Origin: Lepidodermella squamata
Lineage: Eukaryota > Animalia > Gastrotricha
NCBI GenBank assembly: GCA_047495785.1
Contig: JBLDXI010000012.1
Location: forward strand, 1,116,001-1,180,000
DNA: 64,000 bases
Direction: 5' to 3'
In this document: piece after piece, positions 26,591 to 37,805 of the stretch
How the letters are laid out: every line of letters begins with the position of its first letter
Numbering within the stretch: position 1 is the first letter of the stretch
Program-made: the position numbers and the translations under genes
The notes under the pieces: generated by a model
What the model was told of the DNA's origin: nothing
The model's database searches: none
Seen by the model: the letters and a program-made list of their open reading frames with translations, nothing else

Positions 26591-29500
26591 TTAAAATATC
26601 TGATTTTTCGAGCAACAACTTATTATTAACCTTAGAAGCAAGTGCATGGATTGGTCTGGAATATCTCTCATTACGGTATTAGCTAAGAATTGTAAGAAAA
26701 GTAATACCAGAACATATCGTATGCCAAATCCTGTCATATTGTCGCTTCGAATCGTTAGGAGTAACGGCGACCCTTCCGCCACTTGACACGGCGAGTAACT
26801 CGCCGACCCGCCCAAAAAACAAATCTCCTTCCGAGGATCAAACCCAACATTGTTCAAACGCCGCGAGCACTCGCTGTCGGATAAGACGACTCCAGAAGCG
26901 TAGCGATATTCAGTCAGGCTATTTACGTAGTTATTGATGCCGACGATATCAGCTGCGGACGACCACATCACATCCTGATCGCAGAATCGCGGCAAGCAGA
27001 TCGTGTTGGCTTTCGGAGATGTTTCGGCAGAAAGTCGGACGATGGAAATGCCATCAGTACGCGCTGCTCTCAACGAATCGTTCCAATGATTCTCGCAAGT
27101 GGACGAGGTTATAATTGTCCTGTCATCGATCAGCGCTGCGAAACATGGCGTGGGAGATTCTTTGTCCTCGGGAAAAATCAAGAAAGGGAACTGGCTTGGC
27201 CAAGCGCTAGCGGGGTACCGGGCTGGCTGGGCTACTGGAAAACTAAGTTCCTTCAAGCAAATACCACAAACCTCGCGAGTAGCAAGGAATCGAAAACCCT
27301 CCTGAATTTGAAACAGATCTTCCAGAGACAATTTTGCCTCGTAAATCGTCACTCCAGCAATAGCGTCATAACCATTTTGGATGGTCACTGATAGTTTCGA
27401 AGATTTCCCAACTACAACACCCTCTGCTTCTGCCCACCAAATTCGAGGAACTCCCTCGGGAGGATTAAGCATAGTTGCAACTTGGCTATGATTGTTATAA
27501 ATTGTCAACCAATTTTCACCAGCTGAAAATACAATGCCGATAAACGACCATTCCCCAGCCGAGACAATGCCAGGGGCTGAAATTAATTCATTCGAGTTCT
27601 TGAAAGCAAGCACCAGATTATCCGGTGCTTTGTAGCCGATATGAAGTGAGTCGGGTAAAATCTCCAATATTCCACCGAACGTGTTCAATTTGTTTCGATT
27701 GAAGTAGAAAGCGAGAGAGAATCCTTCCGTTGAGCGAATAGGTTGTTTGAAGTCACGAATAGTAAAAATTTCGCCTGTGAATAATACACCGACCTTTCGA
27801 CGAAAAAGCCCTTCTGTTAACACGACGGGGTAAATTTCAACATAGCTGGCTACTAGCCTTCGCGGGCCGATGTCAACGTAGAAGTTTTGAGATGTTAGAG
27901 GCCAAAAGCCGACGAGAGCAAAAGATCTCGGCAAAACAATGCCTAAATTTTAGAATTTTACATTAAATTTCATAAAAAAAATTGGATATTCGTAAATAAG
28001 TAAGTATGAGTTTTCGTCTATTCGTACTTGGAAGGGGTTCCGGGAGCGGATAATTGAAAATAATTTGTTGCACAAAATATTCTGCGTTTGAAACCGAGTA
28101 AAGATAATACTTCAAATGGTTGAAAAAAACGATCTGGCCTTATCTTATTTGCTGTGAAAAATGCTGATTTTCGTTAGATTTTACCATTACAACTGAATCT
28201 TGAGCTTTCTGACCTTTCTGAAAGGTTCCACTGCGACTTTATCACCTGAAAATGCTCTACTGGAATCGCTCTTTCCAACTAGGTGAAGTATTAGCTTTAC
28301 TCGGTTTCAAACGTAGAATGTTTTGAGCAAAACATTTTCAATTATCCGCTCCTGGAACCCCTTCCAAGTACGAAAACGCGTACTTTTTTAAGCGCAAATA
28401 TACCGACCCTTAAAAATCACAAAAAATATAGATTAATTTCAATTTATTCCATTAATTTGATTTGTATTTTTAGATGAAGCTCTGGGTAAAAAATACCTTG
28501 AGATACCCGTTGAATAGAGAAATTTCCACCTTTCTGTGCTTCGCTCAGCTGAGATAAAACATTTTCTTCACTCAAATCAGCGTTGTATTTCAGAGGTTTT
28601 GTTATTGCAAAAACCACGGATGCTTCGACGGGACATTTCAGACTTGAAGCAATCGAAGGAACGTAAGGCTTGAGGGCTTCGCTAGAAGGTCCGAAGTTGT
28701 TTTTGACCTAATAGATTATTTTAAAATTATTCATGGCCATTTTATTCAAGATTTTAATACCCATAGCAGGGCTTGATTTCGGACAGTGGCGTAGTCGTCG
28801 TTTTTGGGATTTTCCCAGCTTCCAGTTGAATTGCTTCCTCCAGTTACACAGACTGTTCCTTGAATTTTGACTTATCGAAATAAATTATTTCAATTGATTA
28901 GGATCAAAATAGTTTCAGCTTACCAGGCAGCTCAAACGAAGCCAGATCCTGGCTAGACTTACACCTCTCTATTACATCTTCTATTTGCTTTCTTGTCAAA
29001 GTTTCATTGTAGCTTAAAAAGCACGATATCGCCTCAAGTATGGTTACGCCAAAATAAGTTGGGTTGACCTTGGGCCTATTGTTGACGTAACCTAAATTCA
29101 TGGAGCTGTACTCACTGGGGATATTGTCTTCAATCAATTCTGCCAAGTTGATATCAGCAACTTTTTTGAGCGTGTAATGCGGCTCAACGCCAAGGTACCC
29201 AACAAGCTGTTTGTTCGCCGTGAAAACAAAGGCGATAAAATGCCACGTTCTATTCAAATTCCAGGCATCGTAAACATAACTTGGCTTCATAATATCGGAT
29301 TGGACACTGTTCTTTCGAACTGTAAATAGCAGCACGTTTTTAGATGGCTCCAGACTAATCTCGACAATGTAGGATGAGACATAAAATGTCGCAATGCCAA
29401 CTTTTCGATGATCGATTGTGTCGCTGTAGAAAAAGAAGGCGGAGGTCTGTTGTCTTGATGAAAACACGCCATTGCGCATATAAATGGCATCCATCGTTGT

Positions 29501-29719
29501 AGAGTCTAAATCAACTCGGGTTACGGCAAACGCGCTGTTCAGGTAACCAAAGGGGCCGGCCTGTTGCCACGGTGCGGCGTAACGGTTGATCGATGTAGAG
29601 CTGACGGCCGAGGCATTGCTGATGTCCTTAGCGCCATACTTGCTGTCATAGGGAACATAGACTACAAGAGAGGCGCCGGTCACCTGTACCCATAAAATTC
29701 CTAGTAGGGCCACATTCAT
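26591..29719 (-). CDS. Secreted protein with two LamG/concanavalin-like domains and a degenerate (non-catalytic) trypsin-like domain
   Basis: Signal peptide MNVALLGILWVQVTG. Two modules contain TWHFIAFVF and EWSFIGIVF with TLTRKQI and KLSLEDL ends. They are followed by VCG..WP..CFAALIDDRTIITSSTC..TICLP..EICF..PCQVAEGSPLL. Confidence 0.65.
27982..28409. mobile_element. Family A TIR element in an intron of the LamG gene
   Basis: About 95-bp inverted arms at 28021-28114 and 28284-28373; the right end reads ...ataccgaccc|TTAA. Confidence 0.75.
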
Positions 29720-29905
29720 CTTAGCAGAAAATTGTGTAATTACAGTTTGTGATAAGCATTCGGTAAATCTGCTGTAATTAAACCGATTTCAATCTGGCAA
29801 CCGAGAATATTTATTATAGGTCAAAATTAGACGGAAAATCCACGCATAAGTAATAATTCCAATTTTCGGTAGTGAAAAATTGCGTTTTATATGGCAGATT
29901 TTTTT

Positions 29906-30363
29906 TCACAGGTGAAATTGAGATAGAACACTGGCAACTCGTTCCATTTTGGCAGCATCCGTTAGATCAACGTTGAGCTTGGCTCTGTCTTGAATAAAAC
30001 CAATCCATCCGTCCTCGTGATCGAAGCCAGCTTGCAAGTTGATCGTGATAACAGGTTTATTCTTCGAATTCACAGCATCAACAACTTCCTTCCGGCAACT
30101 TTCGTTGAATTTAAAGTCGGAGCAAACGAATGCTACGACAACATCGGCTTCGTTTAATCTCTGCAAATAAATTTGGAAATTAACGAATTGTAGCGTAAAT
30201 TAGTTCAAACCTCATTGATTTCGTCGCTAACTTGCTTATTGGTATTGAATTTATCCAAAAGCCATACGTCGATACCTTTCTGGGCTAAGAGTTTCGCTAA
30301 TTTAGCAACATCAGCCGGCCGATATTGCTTGGCGTAGCTGAAGTAAAGCTTGCGAATTGCCAT
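29906..30363 (-). CDS. Stand-alone TIR-domain protein (135 aa; exons 30363-30211 and 30160-29906)
   Basis: MAIRKLYFSYA..LAKLLAQKGIDVWLLD..INERLNEADVVVAFVCSDFKFNESCRKEV..KNKPVITI..GWIG fits the TIR_2/SARM-like pattern. Confidence 0.85.
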
Positions 30364-31054
30364 CTAATTTTTAACCCACTAAAATAACAGATGAACTAAT
30401 TTTTCCAGAAAAAATGGGCTGGAAAAGAGGGACCATCGCGCTGTATTATAAAAAAGGCCTCTATTATTCTCAATGAATGGATCCGGTGCGTAAAAAGCAC
30501 GCGTAATTTACCTTGAGACACACATATGATATAGCGCTTGCTATTCATCTCGGTAAGGTGGTATGCGGTCGAAAAAAATTCTTCTTGCGAGAGACTAGCG
30601 CGAAAAATCTATCGAATTTGTTGTTTTTACGTATTGATTTTCCTCTAGGCGTTCTGAATATCTGTTTTATTATCATTAAGAACTTGAGTTTTTTTCAGAT
30701 TTTTTTTAATATACGGCTGATTTTTGAAGACTCAATTTTCTTTTATTCTCATTTTTCAGTCTTTGGTTCGGAAAAAAAACAAAAATAAAAGTTTTTATCT
30801 GAGAAATGTTTGTGAAAATCTGAATAAAGGCGAAGGTGTGCGTCATTAATTAATAATTACGACAAAAACGTGATGTGTTTGAATAATAAATGATCGCCAA
30901 GTTTTTTATTGCAGAATCAATAAGCTGCACATGGAAAATCTCATTTGCTAATCTCTTCGCAAATGAATCGCACCTGTGCGTGTAATATTCGAACCCGTGT
31001 GTTCGAGCGCGATAATGCACCTATCATAGACAATAGTTTAGATTTCTAGACAAA

Positions 31055-32229
31055 ATGGTAACGATTGCCAGAACGCCGTCGACAGCAGATGGGCCCGTTA
31101 TCTACATCAGCCACGCCCCAGATTTCGATGCAGAAATCGGCCGAAAATTAGCTCAATGGTTGAGGGCGACGAAGCGCTTCAAAAAAGTTGAATTGCCAAA
31201 AGGAAGCACGATTCAGTCGTCGAAATTATCGGCATCTAATGTAAAAAAAAAAATCCCAGTAATCCGCCTTAAAATTTGCAATAAAATTATTTTCAGGGCT
31301 TGCAATACGCTGATTTGGTTCTTATCTGCTACAACAATTCATATTGTTTGGACGAAAATTGCATGAAAGAGTTTCATTTTGCTCATAACAAGAAAATGCC
31401 GATGTTACTGCTCGACACTGAACAATCAATGAAGAACAAGCCTAATACCGAAATTTTATACCGAATCGATTTGCAAAGAAATCTCATCGACGTCGATTTC
31501 TCCAATGGAATCAAAGAATTCGAGAAAATCCTAAACTCAATCATCCGACTGTTGAACTGTGAACTTTTCGACGAATATTCCCTCTACAAATTCACATGTG
31601 TTATCGACGTCGCTGATCGGCTTGGTTTCGAACCGATCTTCCCACTCGCCCTCGTCGTTGTAGGAGACAAAAAAGAATCTGAGAAATTCTGGCTTTACAA
31701 TCCTTTGATCAACAACAATGCATTTCGCTTGAAGAAAGACGAGCGGTTGAAGTTGGACCTTGAGTTCAACGAAGATATCGGCAAGCCGTTAACAGTTCGC
31801 GTTGATCATTATGTTTACGGCGGTCAACATCTCGATATCAGTGCGTTTCTCGAGGCTATAGAGCTTACACCGTGTTTCCAATTGGGGGTTAAGCATGAAT
31901 TCTCGTTTGGTACAAAAGGATCGTCGTTGTCATGGTCAGATGGCGATTGGCTAATTTCATGGCTATGCATCGATGATCAACTTCGCATGGAAGCTCAATT
32001 TAGCTTGGTATTCTGTGGAGTTTATGGGGAATCTCAGTCCGAGTTAATCGATGTGATGCTGAGACCTGGCGCAAGTGATTTTCATCTCGTGTCTCTGCAA
32101 GAAAATATTGGGAAGTTCTTGAATATCCGGATGAGGTGCAGCGAACCTGCTAGTGATGTTTTAAAAATTGTCTACCTCAAACTTCATCACCTGAAAACCA
32201 AGACAGATTATATGTTCAATTATGGCTGA
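31055..32229 (+). CDS. TIR domain plus two putative PLAT/LH2 domains (372 aa; exons 31055-31240 and 31297-32229)
   Basis: TIR part reads VIYISHA...GLQYADLVLICYNNSYCLDENCMKEFHFAHNKKMPMLLL. Two beta modules follow: LVVVGDKKESEKFWL..EDIGKPLTVRVDH..FLEAIEL and LVFCGVYGES..RPGASDFHLV..ENIGKFLNIRM..YMF. Confidence 0.75.
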
Positions 32230-32285
32230 TATTAAAATACATTTTCGGAAACTGAATTCAACTGAATTTCACACTCGAGCAATTG

Positions 32286-32452
32286 TTCACGTGAAAGTCA
32301 TTTCACGTGGCCTTTGACCTTTGGATTGACACCAAATAAAAAATAGCATCATAATAAAATCAGCAGGTGATCTGGACCCATTGTTGTTGCTATTTTTAGC
32401 ATGTCTCACCCGTGCCGCAGCGCGCGCCAAAATCCGAACAAGCGCTATAAAA
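32286..32452 (+). promoter_or_regulatory. Promoter of sHSP A2: two CACGTG E-boxes, a DR1-like motif, a MEF2-consensus site and a TATA box
   Basis: ttcacgtgaa and ttcacgtggcctttgacct; CTATTTTTAG at 32390-32399; TATAAAA at 32446-32452. Confidence 0.55.
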
Positions 32453-32558: not shown

Positions 32559-34093
32559 ATGGCCTGCTCTTTCGCTAACAACGCTTCGTCCGTCCTGTCG
32601 GCTGGTTTCGACGGTCTTGCTGCCAAGCTCGGCCAATACAACCAATCTGGTCTCGCTGGCATCAACGCCGCCTCGGCTGCCACTGGCTTTGGCGCCAACA
32701 GCAACGTCTTTGGTGGTGTTCTCGGCGGTAACGTCAACAACTGGGCTGGTGCCTACAACAACGGCCTCGTCGGCGGTCAGATCAACGCCAACAACGCCGC
32801 TGCTCAGGTCGGCGCCAAGATCGGCGCCCTGATCGGCCAGGAGTACGGTGCTCAGCTGGGTGCTGCCATCGCCGGCCAGCTGAACGCCACCTTCGGAGCC
32901 CAGTGGGCCGCCCAGCTGGGAGCTGCCTACGGCGCCGAGGTCGTCGCCGAGTTGGGTGCCCAACTGGCCGTCTTCGCCGCCGCCACCGGATTCGGCGTTC
33001 AGTCGACCGCCCAGCAGGGTGCCCAGTGGGGTGCTCAGGCCGGTGCCCAGTTGGCCGCTGTTCTGGCTGCCAAGCTCGGCGGACAGGCTGCCGCTGCTGG
33101 TGCCTTCTTCGCCAACAACCAGGCCGTCGCTCAGATCGGCGCCGCGATCATCTCGCAGGCTGGAGCCAAGCTGGGTGCTTGCGTCGCTGCCCAGATCAAC
33201 GGCGGCGCCCTCAACAACGGTGTGTTCGGTGGCCTGAACAGCTACAACGCCAGCCTCTTCGGTGGCAACCAGCTGAACAACTTCGGTGGTGCTTTCGGCG
33301 GTAACGTCAACAACTTGGCTGGTGCCTACAACAACGGCCTCTTCGGTGGTGCCAACAACAACTTCTCTGGCCTCTTCGGTGGCAACGCTGCCTTCAACGG
33401 TCAGATCGCTGGCAACTTCGGCGGCCTCTTCGGCGGTGCCAACACCTTCGCCAACCAGGCTGGTCTCTTCGGCGGCAACATCAACGGCCTCGCCAACTCG
33501 CAGGCTGCCGCCGACAAGCTGTACAACATCGCCTTCCGCCCGTCCAGCCAGGCCGAGCTCTACACCCTGACCAACCCGGTGCAGTACGTCGACAACCAGG
33601 GCAACCGCCAGCTGTTCCTCGCCTTCGAGCTCAAGGGCTTCAAGCCTGAGGAGGTCGCCGTCACCCTGAACAAGGCCGAGCGCGCCGTCGTCGTCGAGGC
33701 TGCCCACGAGGCCAAGGACGGCAAGGAGCACACCGTCGCCCGCAAGTACTCGCGCAAGTTCGTCCTGCCCGAGGTGAGCTATTGAATCATTTCCAACTTG
33801 AAATGCTAATTTTTCTTTATTTTCAGACCCTCGCCAAGGTCGACCTGGCCAAGGTTGAGCTCAAGTCGCAGCTGAACGCCAACGGCTTCCTGACCATCGA
33901 GGCCGAGCTGCCGAAGCTGAGCGCCGAGGAGATCGCCAAGCTACCGGTTTCGTCGTCCCAGCTGCTCACCGCCGCTGCCCTGAACAACAGCAACGTCTAC
34001 GGCAACGTTTTCAGTGGCAACAGCCAGTACGGCAACAACGTCTACGGCAACATCGCCAATGCCGTCAAGCCCGTCACCGTCAAGACCGCCTAA
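32559..34093 (+). CDS. Giant sHSP subtype A, copy 2 (493 aa; exons 32559-33773 and 33827-34093)
   Basis: Near-identical to copy A1 apart from indels in the FG/N-rich repeats; same intron position. Confidence 0.92.
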
Positions 34094-34831: not shown

Positions 34832-37805
34832 ATGACTGCGGTGGTGAGTAATACAGCTCCATTTCGAGACCGCCAAAACTCGACGGCGCCACCGCCGACG
34901 GCTGTGTTTCGAGACCGCCAAAACTCGACGGCGCCACCGCCGACGGCTGTGTTTCGAGAGCGACAAAACTCGACATTGGGGGTGAACAACAACAATAACA
35001 ACAACAATGGCGCCGAAATTAGAGATCGAAAAAATTCATCATTCATAAATAATGAACAGCGCTCACGTTCGCCGGATCCGGAATCGTCGCTGAACAACAC
35101 TCAGGTATATTACCTCATTGTTATTTTCCCAAATTAGCCAAAAAAATCTGTGAGAAAAACTATAGCATTATTTTTCATCCATTTTTTGTTTCAAAATGAG
35201 GCTAATATCAGGTAATTCAGCTGTAACTTTTCATGAAAACGTAACAGTGAGATGCTACCAAAAGGTTACAATTGATTTTTAATCATTTTTTTTAATTATT
35301 TTTCTGATCTGTTTGCAGGAGCAGATTCTCGTCCCGCGGCCGAAAACCATGTTGGAAAGGCGGCGCGTCAAATTTGCTCTGGAGACTAAACCTGAAAATC
35401 AGCGACTTTTCATATCATCTGCACGTAAGAAAATGCAAAACTTGCACGATCTATTGGATACGGATAAAACCTATGAGCTTTATGTGGCACTGGCTTCGCG
35501 AGTGATAACAGACGTCGAGCAACGCGACCCCGTGAGTCACCTGACGCCGCTGAACAAGGTCTGCTGCGGATTGCCGTCGTGGGACGTGCGTAAGCGCCAT
35601 TTATGGATGAAGATTTTCATCAAATTCGGCGCTAACTTGAATGCGATTGATGATGAGGGTCGTACGATTTTGGCGCAGTTGATTTTGGCCGAAAAAGAGG
35701 AATTATTTTGCCTGCTGGTCGAGGCCGATTTGAAAGCCACGCTGAATTTTACGCTCATCGATAAGGATGGAAATAATCTTCTGCATTTGGCGGCTTATCA
35801 TTGGCTCAAAAAAGCAACGAAGGTGCGTTTAAAAAATTATTAACAATTTCCATCTTTCGAAAATTAATTATTTTTTGTAATATTTTGATCGCAAAGAAAA
35901 TTAGCGCAGATATCATAATTTCTTCAAATGGGGGTCTAAATATTTGCGCCGCTAAATTTATGCTTCCTGGCAATAAAAATAGGGTCACACCATTATCGGA
36001 AATCGGAACCAAATTAAAGAATTTTTCGCCCTAAATCACCCTTTCTGAATTTTCTGTAATTTCAAGATTGATTCTATAAATCCAAGTCTTATACAGAAAA
36101 CCAGGGAGAATTTTAAATCAATTTATTTTGATTTTTTCTTAATAAATCTGGAAATTTAAAAAAAAAATGAGCAAATAGAGTTTTAAGCGAGTTAATTATT
36201 TGAAATTTTGTTCCACTAGCAATTTTTAGTTCCGCTAAAAGTAAGACCTCTAAAAATCGCTCCGATTCTTTGCGATTTGACTGTCTCTCTTTTCTTAATC
36301 CGCCCGCTTGACCCTGCGATTTTTTTAGATGCCTGGTACCAGGTAACATCAGCTAGTAATGAAAATTTTCAATCTTGGCTTTTAAGACTGTTGATATCGG
36401 AAAAATCACTGATTTGTAAAATCGATACTTGGAATCGATATTGTCTCTGCACGCTGAATTATTACTCGTAAGCTGACTGGTTATCGCGCAAAATTAGTAA
36501 AAAGATCTATCGGTTTGGCATGATAAAGAAAAGTTCAGATCCTATGTGAGAAACTTTAAAATAAACCATAATCATCTACCCAAAATATTGTGCTGGGAGC
36601 CTCAAATTTTAGTGTGAACTCTGAGGTGTCACCAAGTCTCACCAAGAATTTCAAGCATTTTTCGAGAACATTACAAATTGCGCGGATTTATACGACAATT
36701 TTCTTCGATTTTATCGGTCAGTCATAAAAAAATTGCGTAATTCTAGAACGTGTTATGTTTCATGAAGTATGGAAATACTTATGCGTTTATGTGAAATCCC
36801 ATAAAATTATTCTAATTTTTATTATTTTTCACGTTGAAATGTAAATTTATCACACTTCAGATAATATTGGCGCGAACTGCGGGTTACGGCACTCCTCTGC
36901 ATGAAGCGTACAACAATACAGGCCAAACGGCGTTAATGATCGCGTGCGAGAACGGCGACATTGCGCTGGCTTGCGATCTCGTTGAAGCCGGTGCCGATTT
37001 GACGATTCGCGAGTCGAATTGCCGCTACGGCTCGCAGATGGCCATCGAAATAATGGCAACAACGCTGTTGCGCAACGACATTCAACGCAAGTACACTATC
37101 GTAAACGACGACGGTATCAAAACTATTCTCGAGCGGCTAATCCGCCTTTCGTGTAAATACATGACGGCAGCCGGGCAGCTGGCTAAAATGGGCCGGCTAT
37201 TACGCTGGTGCGCCACGTCCGTGTTAGGCCAGGCGAAGGCGCGCCAACTCTGTGAAGAATTCCGCCCGAAACGCCCGCCGCAACTCCTCGTCTACAACGG
37301 CCCTATGCCGAAATTACTCGCGCCACCGTCGGCCCGCCAGCCGCGAAAATCAGCCTCCTCAAGCAATAGCAGCTCCGTAGCCAGCCCGGCTGAGCCGAAC
37401 GACGAGATGATGTTCAATTTGAAGGCATTTGATCTGCCACCTGAGGGTAACACTCAGCCGCGAGTTGGTGACGCAGCACCGGCGCCCGAGCAAACACAAC
37501 CGGCGTCTGTTGTCTATTCGCTGCTTGATATTTATTCTTTTATGTGGACGCCCGGCTGTACGGTGAATGCGCCAAAGTTGGCCGATCGCATCCGCCCGCA
37601 TGAGCATGCCTATTTGTTGAACGCGTGTATAGAACGGACGGAGGAGGATGGCGACTTGAATGCGAGTGACGGCGGGTCGCGCATGACGCACAGCCGCGCG
37701 TCCATTTTCGGCAAAGCCGGCAAACAGCTGAGCATGTTCAGCAGACTGAAACGAACCGCATCGAGCACGAAATTCAAAGGTCCAATTCCAGAAGGCACCA
37801 TGTAG
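34832..37805 (+). CDS. Ankyrin-repeat protein with an N-terminal RDRQNST repeat (at least 3 exons: 34832-35104, 35319-35822, 36861-37805)
   Basis: Motifs GANLNAIDDEGRTIL, DKDGNNLLHLAA and GQTALMIACENGDIALACDLVEAGADL, with GT-AG phase-0 junctions. Confidence 0.75.
34862..34974 (+). repeat. Coding 45-bp tandem repeat (2.5 copies)
   Basis: tttcgagaccgccaaaactcgacggcgccaccgccgacggctgtg starts at 34862 and 34907, with a partial copy at 34952. Confidence 0.9.
35929..36625. mobile_element. Family B element (reverse orientation) in an ankyrin gene intron
   Basis: ggggtctaaatatttgc and aaaatcactgatttgtaaaatcgatac.tggaatcgatat match the reverse complement of about 1326-1570. Confidence 0.6.

Follow-up and report, generated by a model that had tools for sequence, protein, structure and literature searches.

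A divergent pair of transcribed TIR-domain genes in Lepidodermella squamata, one of them with two candidate PLAT-like modules

In a 64,000-nucleotide stretch of the Lepidodermella squamata genome (the window), we found two divergent TIR genes that we read, with a probability of about 0.6, as an old, lineage-restricted paralogous pair that arose by inverted duplication and in which the C-terminal tail of the longer protein is most likely PLAT-like. Gene A, with two exons on the minus strand, encodes 135 aa; the two exons of gene B, on the plus strand, encode 372 aa. Their ATGs lie at 30363 and 31055, with 691 bp between them, and in-frame stops stand upstream of both, that of gene B at 31034-31036. 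The features of the locus are as follows, in window positions.

29906..30160, minus strand: gene A exon 2; 84 codons (29909-30160) and the stop codon (29908-29906); second half of the TIR domain; codon of E76 at 30088-30086
30161..30210, minus strand: gene A intron; 50 nt, GT..AG, phase 0; junction read in cDNA
30211..30363, minus strand: gene A exon 1; first TIR half in 51 codons; box-1-like motif LYFSYA
30364..30474, minus strand: gene A 5' UTR; mRNA 5' end at about 30474, from X1 cDNA records
30475..31054, no strand: spacer between genes A and B; presumably promoter sequence for both genes
31055..31240, plus strand: gene B exon 1; first TIR half in 62 codons; box-1-like motif VIYISHA
31241..31296, plus strand: gene B intron; 56 nt, GT..AG, phase 0; from the sequence and the A/B alignment
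31297..31554, plus strand: first part of gene B exon 2 (whole coding part of the exon 31297-32226); second half of the TIR domain, residues 63-148; codon of E87 at 31369-31371
31573..31941, plus strand: gene B module 1; candidate beta module of PLAT type, residues about 155-277
31942..32229, plus strand: gene B module 2 and the stop codon (32227-32229); residues about 278-372; candidate PLAT-like beta module

These models reproduced the layout of the original prediction, which had described divergent TIR genes of 135 and 372 aa with ATGs about 690 bp apart. The phase-0 intron that it had placed at a matching position in both genes falls in one column of the A/B alignment, between E51 and R52 in gene A and between N62 and G63 in gene B, and the candidate glutamate is codon 25 of exon 2 in each gene. 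The absence of transmembrane segments was likewise borne out, as the highest Kyte-Doolittle mean over 19 residues was 0.73 in A and 1.39 in B, and Pfam identified neither an LRR nor a death domain in either gene.

Both genes are real and transcribed. A single cDNA library (run X1) represents the two of them, with read depth over genes A and B and none over 30519-30973, where the DNA run X2 has coverage. The gene A intron is removed in the cDNA, in which X1 contigs join 30160-62 directly to 30211-13 in both directions. Among the X1 cDNA rows listed, the gene B intron had no spliced form, and its model rests on canonical splice sites, frame continuity and a TIR alignment that crosses the junction. 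Two X1 records stop at 30474 and then continue with CCCCATGT (equivalent to ACATGGGG on the RNA strand), a tail that in our reading comes from the end of a template-switch oligo of the SMART type. A fusion of gene A to a downstream 271-aa ORF was ruled out by an AATAAA at 29815-29810 and by zero cDNA depth over 29700-29790.

Both genes are also under strong purifying selection. The comparison lineage, represented by run X2, is approximately 97-98% identical, and all 23 of the listed coding differences in A and B fall at codon position 3. Of these, 21 are synonymous, compared with a synonymous share of approximately 21% expected of random changes; within gene A exon 2, the count is five of five. 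No further relatives appeared in any collection searched, including the genome and metagenome contigs that were scanned with gene A, gene B and the module alignment.

The TIR assignment draws on several profile comparisons. The Pfam TIR_2 profile (PF13676) matched gene A exon 1 over profile positions 3-45 (19.9 bits) and gene A exon 2 over profile positions 48-115 (20.3 bits), collinear with the exon 1 match. Gene B exon 2 matched profile positions 48-109 only (14.9 bits). Each single match lies below the TIR_2 cut-off of 28 bits, in gene A because the exons were searched separately. In hhalign runs against 120 TcpC-family TIRs, gene A gave P=3e-4, residues 16-82 of gene B aligned on TcpC-family columns 9-75 (P=0.004), and an A+B query profile consisting of two sequences only reached E=4e-5 over 123 columns with a probability of 70%. 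With hmmsearch, a TcpC-family profile aligned residues 6-76 of gene A at 10.1 bits and scored approximately 0 bits on gene B. Chance matches were all that came from PDB sequence searches, whether the query was gene A exon 2 or a half-TIR profile of A and B, and from tblastn of the same exon against plasmids; nothing useful came from PADLOC or NCBIfam. On the strength of the profile matches, we assign the gene A product as a TIR domain, and we assign the N-terminus of gene B, which is also homologous to A, to the same domain on moderate evidence. The original prediction of TIR domains in both genes thus stood for both N-termini on TIR_2 and hhalign, for gene B with that reservation.

The two TIR domains are 27% identical over 90 residues, with a local alignment z of 5.3, and BLASTP also aligns gene B exon 1 to A. 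Because this alignment and identity are accompanied by a common intron column, A and B are, judged by sequence, old TIR paralogues. A recent duplication at the DNA level is ruled out, since there are no repeats between the genes. The common intron column and the 27% identical domains are also the reason for proposing that both genes go back to the inverted duplication of a two-exon TIR ancestor.

We then consider the tail of gene B, which the original prediction had labeled as two PLAT domains in a TIR-PLAT-PLAT protein. The TIR domain and two weakly similar modules were retained from that description, but the PLAT label itself found no Pfam or PDB match and draws only on language-model features. 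The tail comprises 218 residues, which the TIR domain joins without a linker, and its two modules are 28% identical in a MAFFT alignment, with a shuffle z of 1.8-2.9; the repeat is therefore marginal (p about 0.02-0.07). In size (about 95-125 residues) and in being beta-rich, the modules are similar to those of PLAT/LH2 proteins such as the lipoxygenase N-terminus, polycystin-1 and LOXHD1, whereas the second module of gene B is short and ends the protein. Additionally, the modules in our estimation resemble PLAT in their hydrophobic pattern and in the motifs G-x-x-G-E-S and D/N-I-G-K, which we treat as a lead only.

In searches with the language-model features of Atlas, one 254-aa PLAT cluster was the top match of the whole tail (0.77), of module 1 (0.82) and of module 2 (0.90), although an Atlas score counts as no more than a lead below 0.9 and shuffled proteins reach 0.8 one third of the time. 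The PLAT cluster shared 176-187 of 256 features with the three queries (181 of 256 for module 1), which is the range that Atlas gives for same-family matches, and 20 of the 30 matches of module 2 belonged to the same PLAT set. The modules are most likely PLAT-like sandwiches, an assignment that is only a lead.

It is a real possibility, if the less favored one, that these C-terminal 218 residues are not PLAT and instead form another beta-sandwich or a new fold, for example one for ligand or protein recognition. Several results lean in this direction. Pfam PLAT (PF01477) gave no match at E<=10 for module 1, for module 2 or for both together. A PDB sequence search with the tail returned chance matches only, word-index protein searches with gene B exon 2 and with the tail gave no match even at E<=10, and exhaustive HMMER with gene B exon 2, run over 1.84 billion representative proteins, found no true relative. 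The lone HMMER match, a 4960-aa fish FN3-repeat protein, was an artefact in which 27 near-identical repeats of at most 2 bits each had been summed. AlphaFold was of no help to the PLAT assignment either, with low-confidence strands in module 1 when gene B exon 2 was modeled alone (pLDDT 30.5) and an unusable model of module 2 when module 1 was supplied as the alignment (pLDDT 42.0). However, a non-PLAT tail would have to accommodate the fact that two non-overlapping modules and the tail containing them share one top PLAT cluster with same-family feature counts, as well as the resemblance in hydrophobic pattern and motifs.

TIR domains are NAD+-consuming enzymes in bacteria, in plants and in animal SARM1, and the original prediction had proposed a candidate NADase glutamate in both genes. 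The motifs that it named, SCRKE in A (E76) and NCMKE in B (E87), are both present. E76 and E87 align to a glutamate present in 120 of 120 TcpC-family TIRs, and TcpC is an NAD+ hydrolase with a catalytic Glu. The tryptophan of the WxxxE motif, four residues before this Glu, is equally invariant in 120 of 120, but it is replaced by Ser72 in A and by Asn83 in B. Therefore, the site is only half canonical: the proposal was right about a Glu at the TcpC catalytic column, and the Trp that accompanies it is absent from both proteins.

Comparison with known TIR enzymes gives a similarly divided picture. Like A and B, the bacterial TcpC-family proteins (such as TcpC of E. coli CFT073; TIR_2) have a TIR domain that aligns over its whole length and have the Glu column in common. 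However, the resemblance to the family HMM is very low, with A at 10 bits and B at about 0 bits, and A and B are eukaryotic spliced genes without the TcpC N-terminal region, B adding its two C-terminal modules. SARM1/TIR-1 and the plant TIR-only and TIR-X proteins are like A and B cytosolic, lack a transmembrane segment and have the helix-C Glu in a C/W-x-x-x-E setting; in plant TIR-only proteins, there is little beyond one TIR domain, as in gene A. In contrast to SARM1, A and B have no ARM or SAM domains, and they have no NB-ARC-LRR partner. They also differ from the SARM1 and plant NADase TIRs in lacking the Trp before the Glu, and they have no detectable sequence relative in the PDB.

The replaced Trp, invariant in the NADase TcpC family, bears on a second alternative, namely that A and B are non-enzymatic adaptors that act through TIR-TIR contacts as scaffolds or receptor inhibitors, with A as a decoy or damper and the adjacency as a leftover of the duplication. 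TLR TIR domains keep this same Glu and yet are reported to be inactive, so Glu alone is insufficient for NADase activity. Moreover, the helix-C motif KEFHFAHN of gene B seems to us to resemble a TLR-type helix C, again as a lead only. However, the Glu has been kept in both old paralogues despite their low identity, and the Pfam match is to TIR_2 and not to the classical animal TIR model. We consider a purely non-enzymatic role doubtful.

For the paralogous pair with a PLAT-like tail, we can outline a putative course of events. The inverted duplication would have led to gene A, now a bare 135-aa cytosolic TIR domain, and to gene B, in which the TIR domain runs straight into two divergent beta-rich modules. 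The C-terminal modules may concentrate B on a membrane or on a partner, whereupon its TIR domains would self-associate and signal. This signaling could be that of a weak or atypical NAD+-consuming enzyme, with the Glu present and the Trp absent, or that of an assembly scaffold. Gene A, as a free TIR, could join or dampen the assemblies of B.

The original prediction went further and proposed a co-regulated two-component module of immunity or cell death, in which a membrane-sensing TIR-PLAT protein nucleates a free TIR enzyme for NAD+ cleavage or cADPR-type signals. In full, this reading would have the common spacer co-regulate A and B, the TIR-PLAT protein respond to an event at a membrane or one of lipid/Ca2+, and the hetero-assembly that results act as the enzyme. 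The divergent orientation with its 691-bp spacer, the presence of A and B in the same cDNA library, the selection on both genes, the Glu at the catalytic column in both and the PLAT lead for both modules are all consistent with such a module. A short spacer common to two divergent genes is a layout feature of head-to-head immune receptor pairs, and in this respect the locus is like the plant NLR pairs of the RRS1/RPS4 type, which are also divergent immune-type genes. However, Pfam identified no NB-ARC, LRR or ankyrin in A or B, so the locus departs from a sensor/executor NLR architecture in lacking the sensor part of the plant pairs. It also lacks an integrated decoy and has the appearance of a single TIR unit duplicated in inverted orientation. 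The A/B adjacency is present in X2 as well, but it is known from that lineage only, whose near-identity means that it says little on conservation. The surrounding genes are of housekeeping type and form no immune cluster, the WxxxE Trp is absent from both proteins, and PLAT remains unproven by Pfam, PDB and AlphaFold. We therefore judge a module of this kind to be improbable. An extension in which PLAT is an address tag of NAD+/ADP-ribose signaling, with TIR-PLAT making ADPR-type signals at a site marked by PLAT, another PLAT protein removing them at that site and A co-assembling with B to tune it, seems to us more speculative still and very improbable.

To the expanded TIR sets of invertebrates outside the model phyla, the locus contributes two expressed and constrained TIR proteins without a receptor part, a bare TIR and a TIR with two probably PLAT-like modules, and we found no published description of the latter architecture. 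Should the tail prove to be PLAT and the Glu active, gene B would encode a TIR enzyme of novel design that is addressed to membranes; otherwise, A and B would be another lineage-specific TIR adaptor pair.

The spacer at 30475..31054 contains no notable repeats. In the comparison with X2, substitutions and indels cluster in it, except over 30804-30998, a segment without a listed difference between the two lineages.

The pair formed by gene A, which encodes a bare TIR protein, and gene B, which encodes a TIR protein with two C-terminal modules, is best explained as an ancient inverted duplication of a two-exon TIR unit, leaving one copy as the bare TIR of A and the other, in B, joined to two modules that are probably PLAT-like. 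Both genes are expressed and kept by selection. Their features are as follows:

30363-30211, minus strand: gene A exon 1, 51 codons
30210-30161, minus strand: gene A intron, 50 nt, GT..AG, phase 0
30160-29909, minus strand: gene A exon 2, 84 codons
29908-29906, minus strand: gene A stop; protein of 135 aa
31055-31240, plus strand: gene B exon 1, 62 codons
31241-31296, plus strand: gene B predicted intron, 56 nt, GT..AG, phase 0
31297-32226, plus strand: gene B exon 2, 310 codons
32227-32229, plus strand: gene B stop; protein of 372 aa

Each gene has two exons and an in-frame stop upstream of its ATG, and the divergent ATGs lie 691 bp apart, in agreement with the original prediction of a 135-aa and 372-aa pair separated by ~690 bp. 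A and B were both free of TM segments and of LRR, death, NB-ARC and ankyrin domains, as had been claimed for TM segments, LRRs and death domains.

We compared two public sequencing runs, X1 and X2 (DNA of a related lineage), with positions 29700-32400 of the window. X1 gave depth over genes A and B and none at 30519-30973. Its contigs joined 30160-62 directly to 30211-13, and the reverse, so the gene A intron is spliced exactly as predicted. Two X1 records ended at 30474 and continued into CCCCATGT (RNA strand: ACATGGGG), presumably the terminal bases of a SMART-type template-switch oligo. Because the gene A intron was removed and this template-switch-like tail was present, we regarded X1 as a cDNA library; the tail also makes about 30474 look like the 5′ start of the gene A mRNA. 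An AATAAA signal lies downstream of gene A at 29815-29810 and X1 had no cDNA depth at 29700-29790, and the joining of gene A to a downstream 271-aa ORF was therefore rejected. This ORF (28904-29719, minus strand, just downstream of gene A) has a hydrophobic N-terminus and no Pfam match, and X1 did not cover its first 20 bases (29700-29719, the portion examined); its only link was a short LamG-like motif in common with the ORF at 26594-27934 (Laminin_G_3, 21 bits).

The X2 lineage is ~97-98% identical to the window and has the same A/B arrangement, with indels confined to the spacer between the genes and the gene A intron. Of the coding differences listed, 6 lie in A and 17 in B; all 23 fall at third codon positions and 21 are synonymous, the two others being M-to-I and K-to-N, compared with an expected synonymous share of about 21% for random single-base changes in these frames. 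Therefore, both reading frames are under strong purifying selection. Within the spacer, a block at 30804-30998 (195 bp; 57-250 bp upstream of the gene B ATG) had no listed difference from X2, and substitutions and indels occupied the remainder; this block may be a conserved promoter element.

TIR identity was assessed with Pfam on the separate exons, and with a family HMM and hhalign on the full-length proteins, with E. coli CFT073 TcpC, whose annotation is NAD(+) hydrolase, and 120 TcpC-family TIR proteins as the comparison set. In gene A, TIR_2 matched both exons collinearly: profile 3-45 in exon 1 (19.9 bits) and 48-115 in exon 2 (20.3 bits). In gene B it matched the beginning of exon 2, over the same profile half as gene A exon 2 (profile 48-109, 14.9 bits). 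The TcpC-family HMM aligned A6-76 (10.1 bits), and in hhalign comparisons with this family A scored P=3e-4 and B residues 16-82 scored P=4e-3. When A and B were combined in a two-sequence profile, E=4e-5 was reached (70% probability, 123 columns) over the whole TIR, with B16-148 on columns 9-139 of the 143 in the template. The B N-terminus shares 27% identity with A across 90 residues (shuffle z=5.3; BLASTP E=0.004), and, as originally noted, the phase-0 introns of the two genes match in position, each interrupting the alignment at one and the same point (E51|R52 in A and N62|G63 in B). A recent DNA-level duplication was rejected, since the two genes share no repeat at the DNA level. From these alignments we conclude that A and the B N-terminus are TIR domains and old paralogues with an ancestral intron in common.

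The glutamates proposed as NADase residues, E76 of A (SCRKE) and E87 of B (NCMKE), align with the glutamate of WTQYE, the TcpC motif, in both HMM and hhalign alignments, and this Glu is invariant (120/120 family members). However, in place of the equally invariant Trp of the motif (120/120), A carries Ser72 and B Asn83, so that the candidate site is only half canonical. A glutamate at this position is also present in TLR TIR domains reported to be inactive; its occurrence at the catalytic column would allow enzyme activity rather than demonstrate it.

In B, the TIR extends to around residue 148 and is followed, with no linker, by the tail from about residue 155. The PLAT-PLAT label given to this tail was upheld only as a lead. 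Language-model features placed the same 254-aa PLAT-bearing cluster first for the whole tail (0.77, 187/256 features in common), module 1 (residues about 155-277; 0.82, 181/256) and module 2 (about 278-372; 0.90, 176/256; 20/30 matches in that set), scores that count as leads by the calibration of the tool, and the PLAT support comes from these features alone. Agreement between two non-overlapping segments is nevertheless more than a single match. In contrast, Pfam PLAT did not match either module or both together, even at E<=10, a PDB sequence search with the tail returned nothing, and the AlphaFold models had pLDDT values of 30.5 (gene B exon 2 by itself) and 42.0 (module 2, with the alignment supplied by module 1). 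No true relative emerged from word-index protein searches with exon 2 and the tail, or when exon 2 was searched exhaustively with HMMER against 1.84 billion representatives. The sole HMMER match, a 4960-aa fish protein with >30 FN3 repeats (E=3.4e-9), was an artefact of 27 summed near-identical matches of <=2 bits each; single matches to giant repeat proteins call for caution, the FN3-repeat score being a sum of matches of about 1-2 bits. The modules are 28% identical with end motifs in common, at marginal significance (shuffle z 1.8-2.9, p 0.02-0.07). We put the chance that the tail is two PLAT-like sandwiches at a little under two in three.

The original prediction, in which a membrane-sensing TIR-PLAT nucleates a free TIR enzyme that cleaves NAD+ in a co-regulated module, is possible and draws on the conserved Glu, but both proteins lack the invariant Trp, the PLAT identity is a lead, and the adjacency is kept only in the near-identical X2 lineage, which says little about conservation. 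The observation of the locus itself was largely right. In the favoured mechanism, gene B would cluster through its tail and its TIR would then self-associate, with atypical NAD+ chemistry or scaffold signalling as the output; gene A could join or dampen this assembly. A and B belong with the TIR-only and TIR-X proteins of invertebrates.

The surroundings are not an immune cluster: within about 15 kb lie a short-chain dehydrogenase, a kinase, a LamG-like secreted protein, a giant small heat-shock protein, an ankyrin protein, histone H1, BBS7 and a ubiquitin hydrolase. The region at 32559-34093 (plus strand) encodes a long Gly/Ala/Asn-rich low-complexity protein with a C-terminal Hsp20/alpha-crystallin domain (Pfam 26.7 bits); downstream, exons at 35313-37805 (plus strand) have weak ankyrin-repeat matches, with no TIR or NB-ARC among the ORFs scanned nearby. 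The window GC of 43.9% is in line with the 43% reported for Lepidodermella squamata, in a paper that does not mention TIR or immunity (PMC11660948). No description of a TIR-PLAT architecture was found in the full-text literature; of three papers that contain both terms, the two listed deal with plant genomics. In E. coli CFT073 (L002:22764-25301), tcpC is followed by a convergent second TIR-domain gene (169 aa) and then a macro-domain gene: a bacterial pair of neighbouring TIR genes next to an ADP-ribose-binding-type domain.
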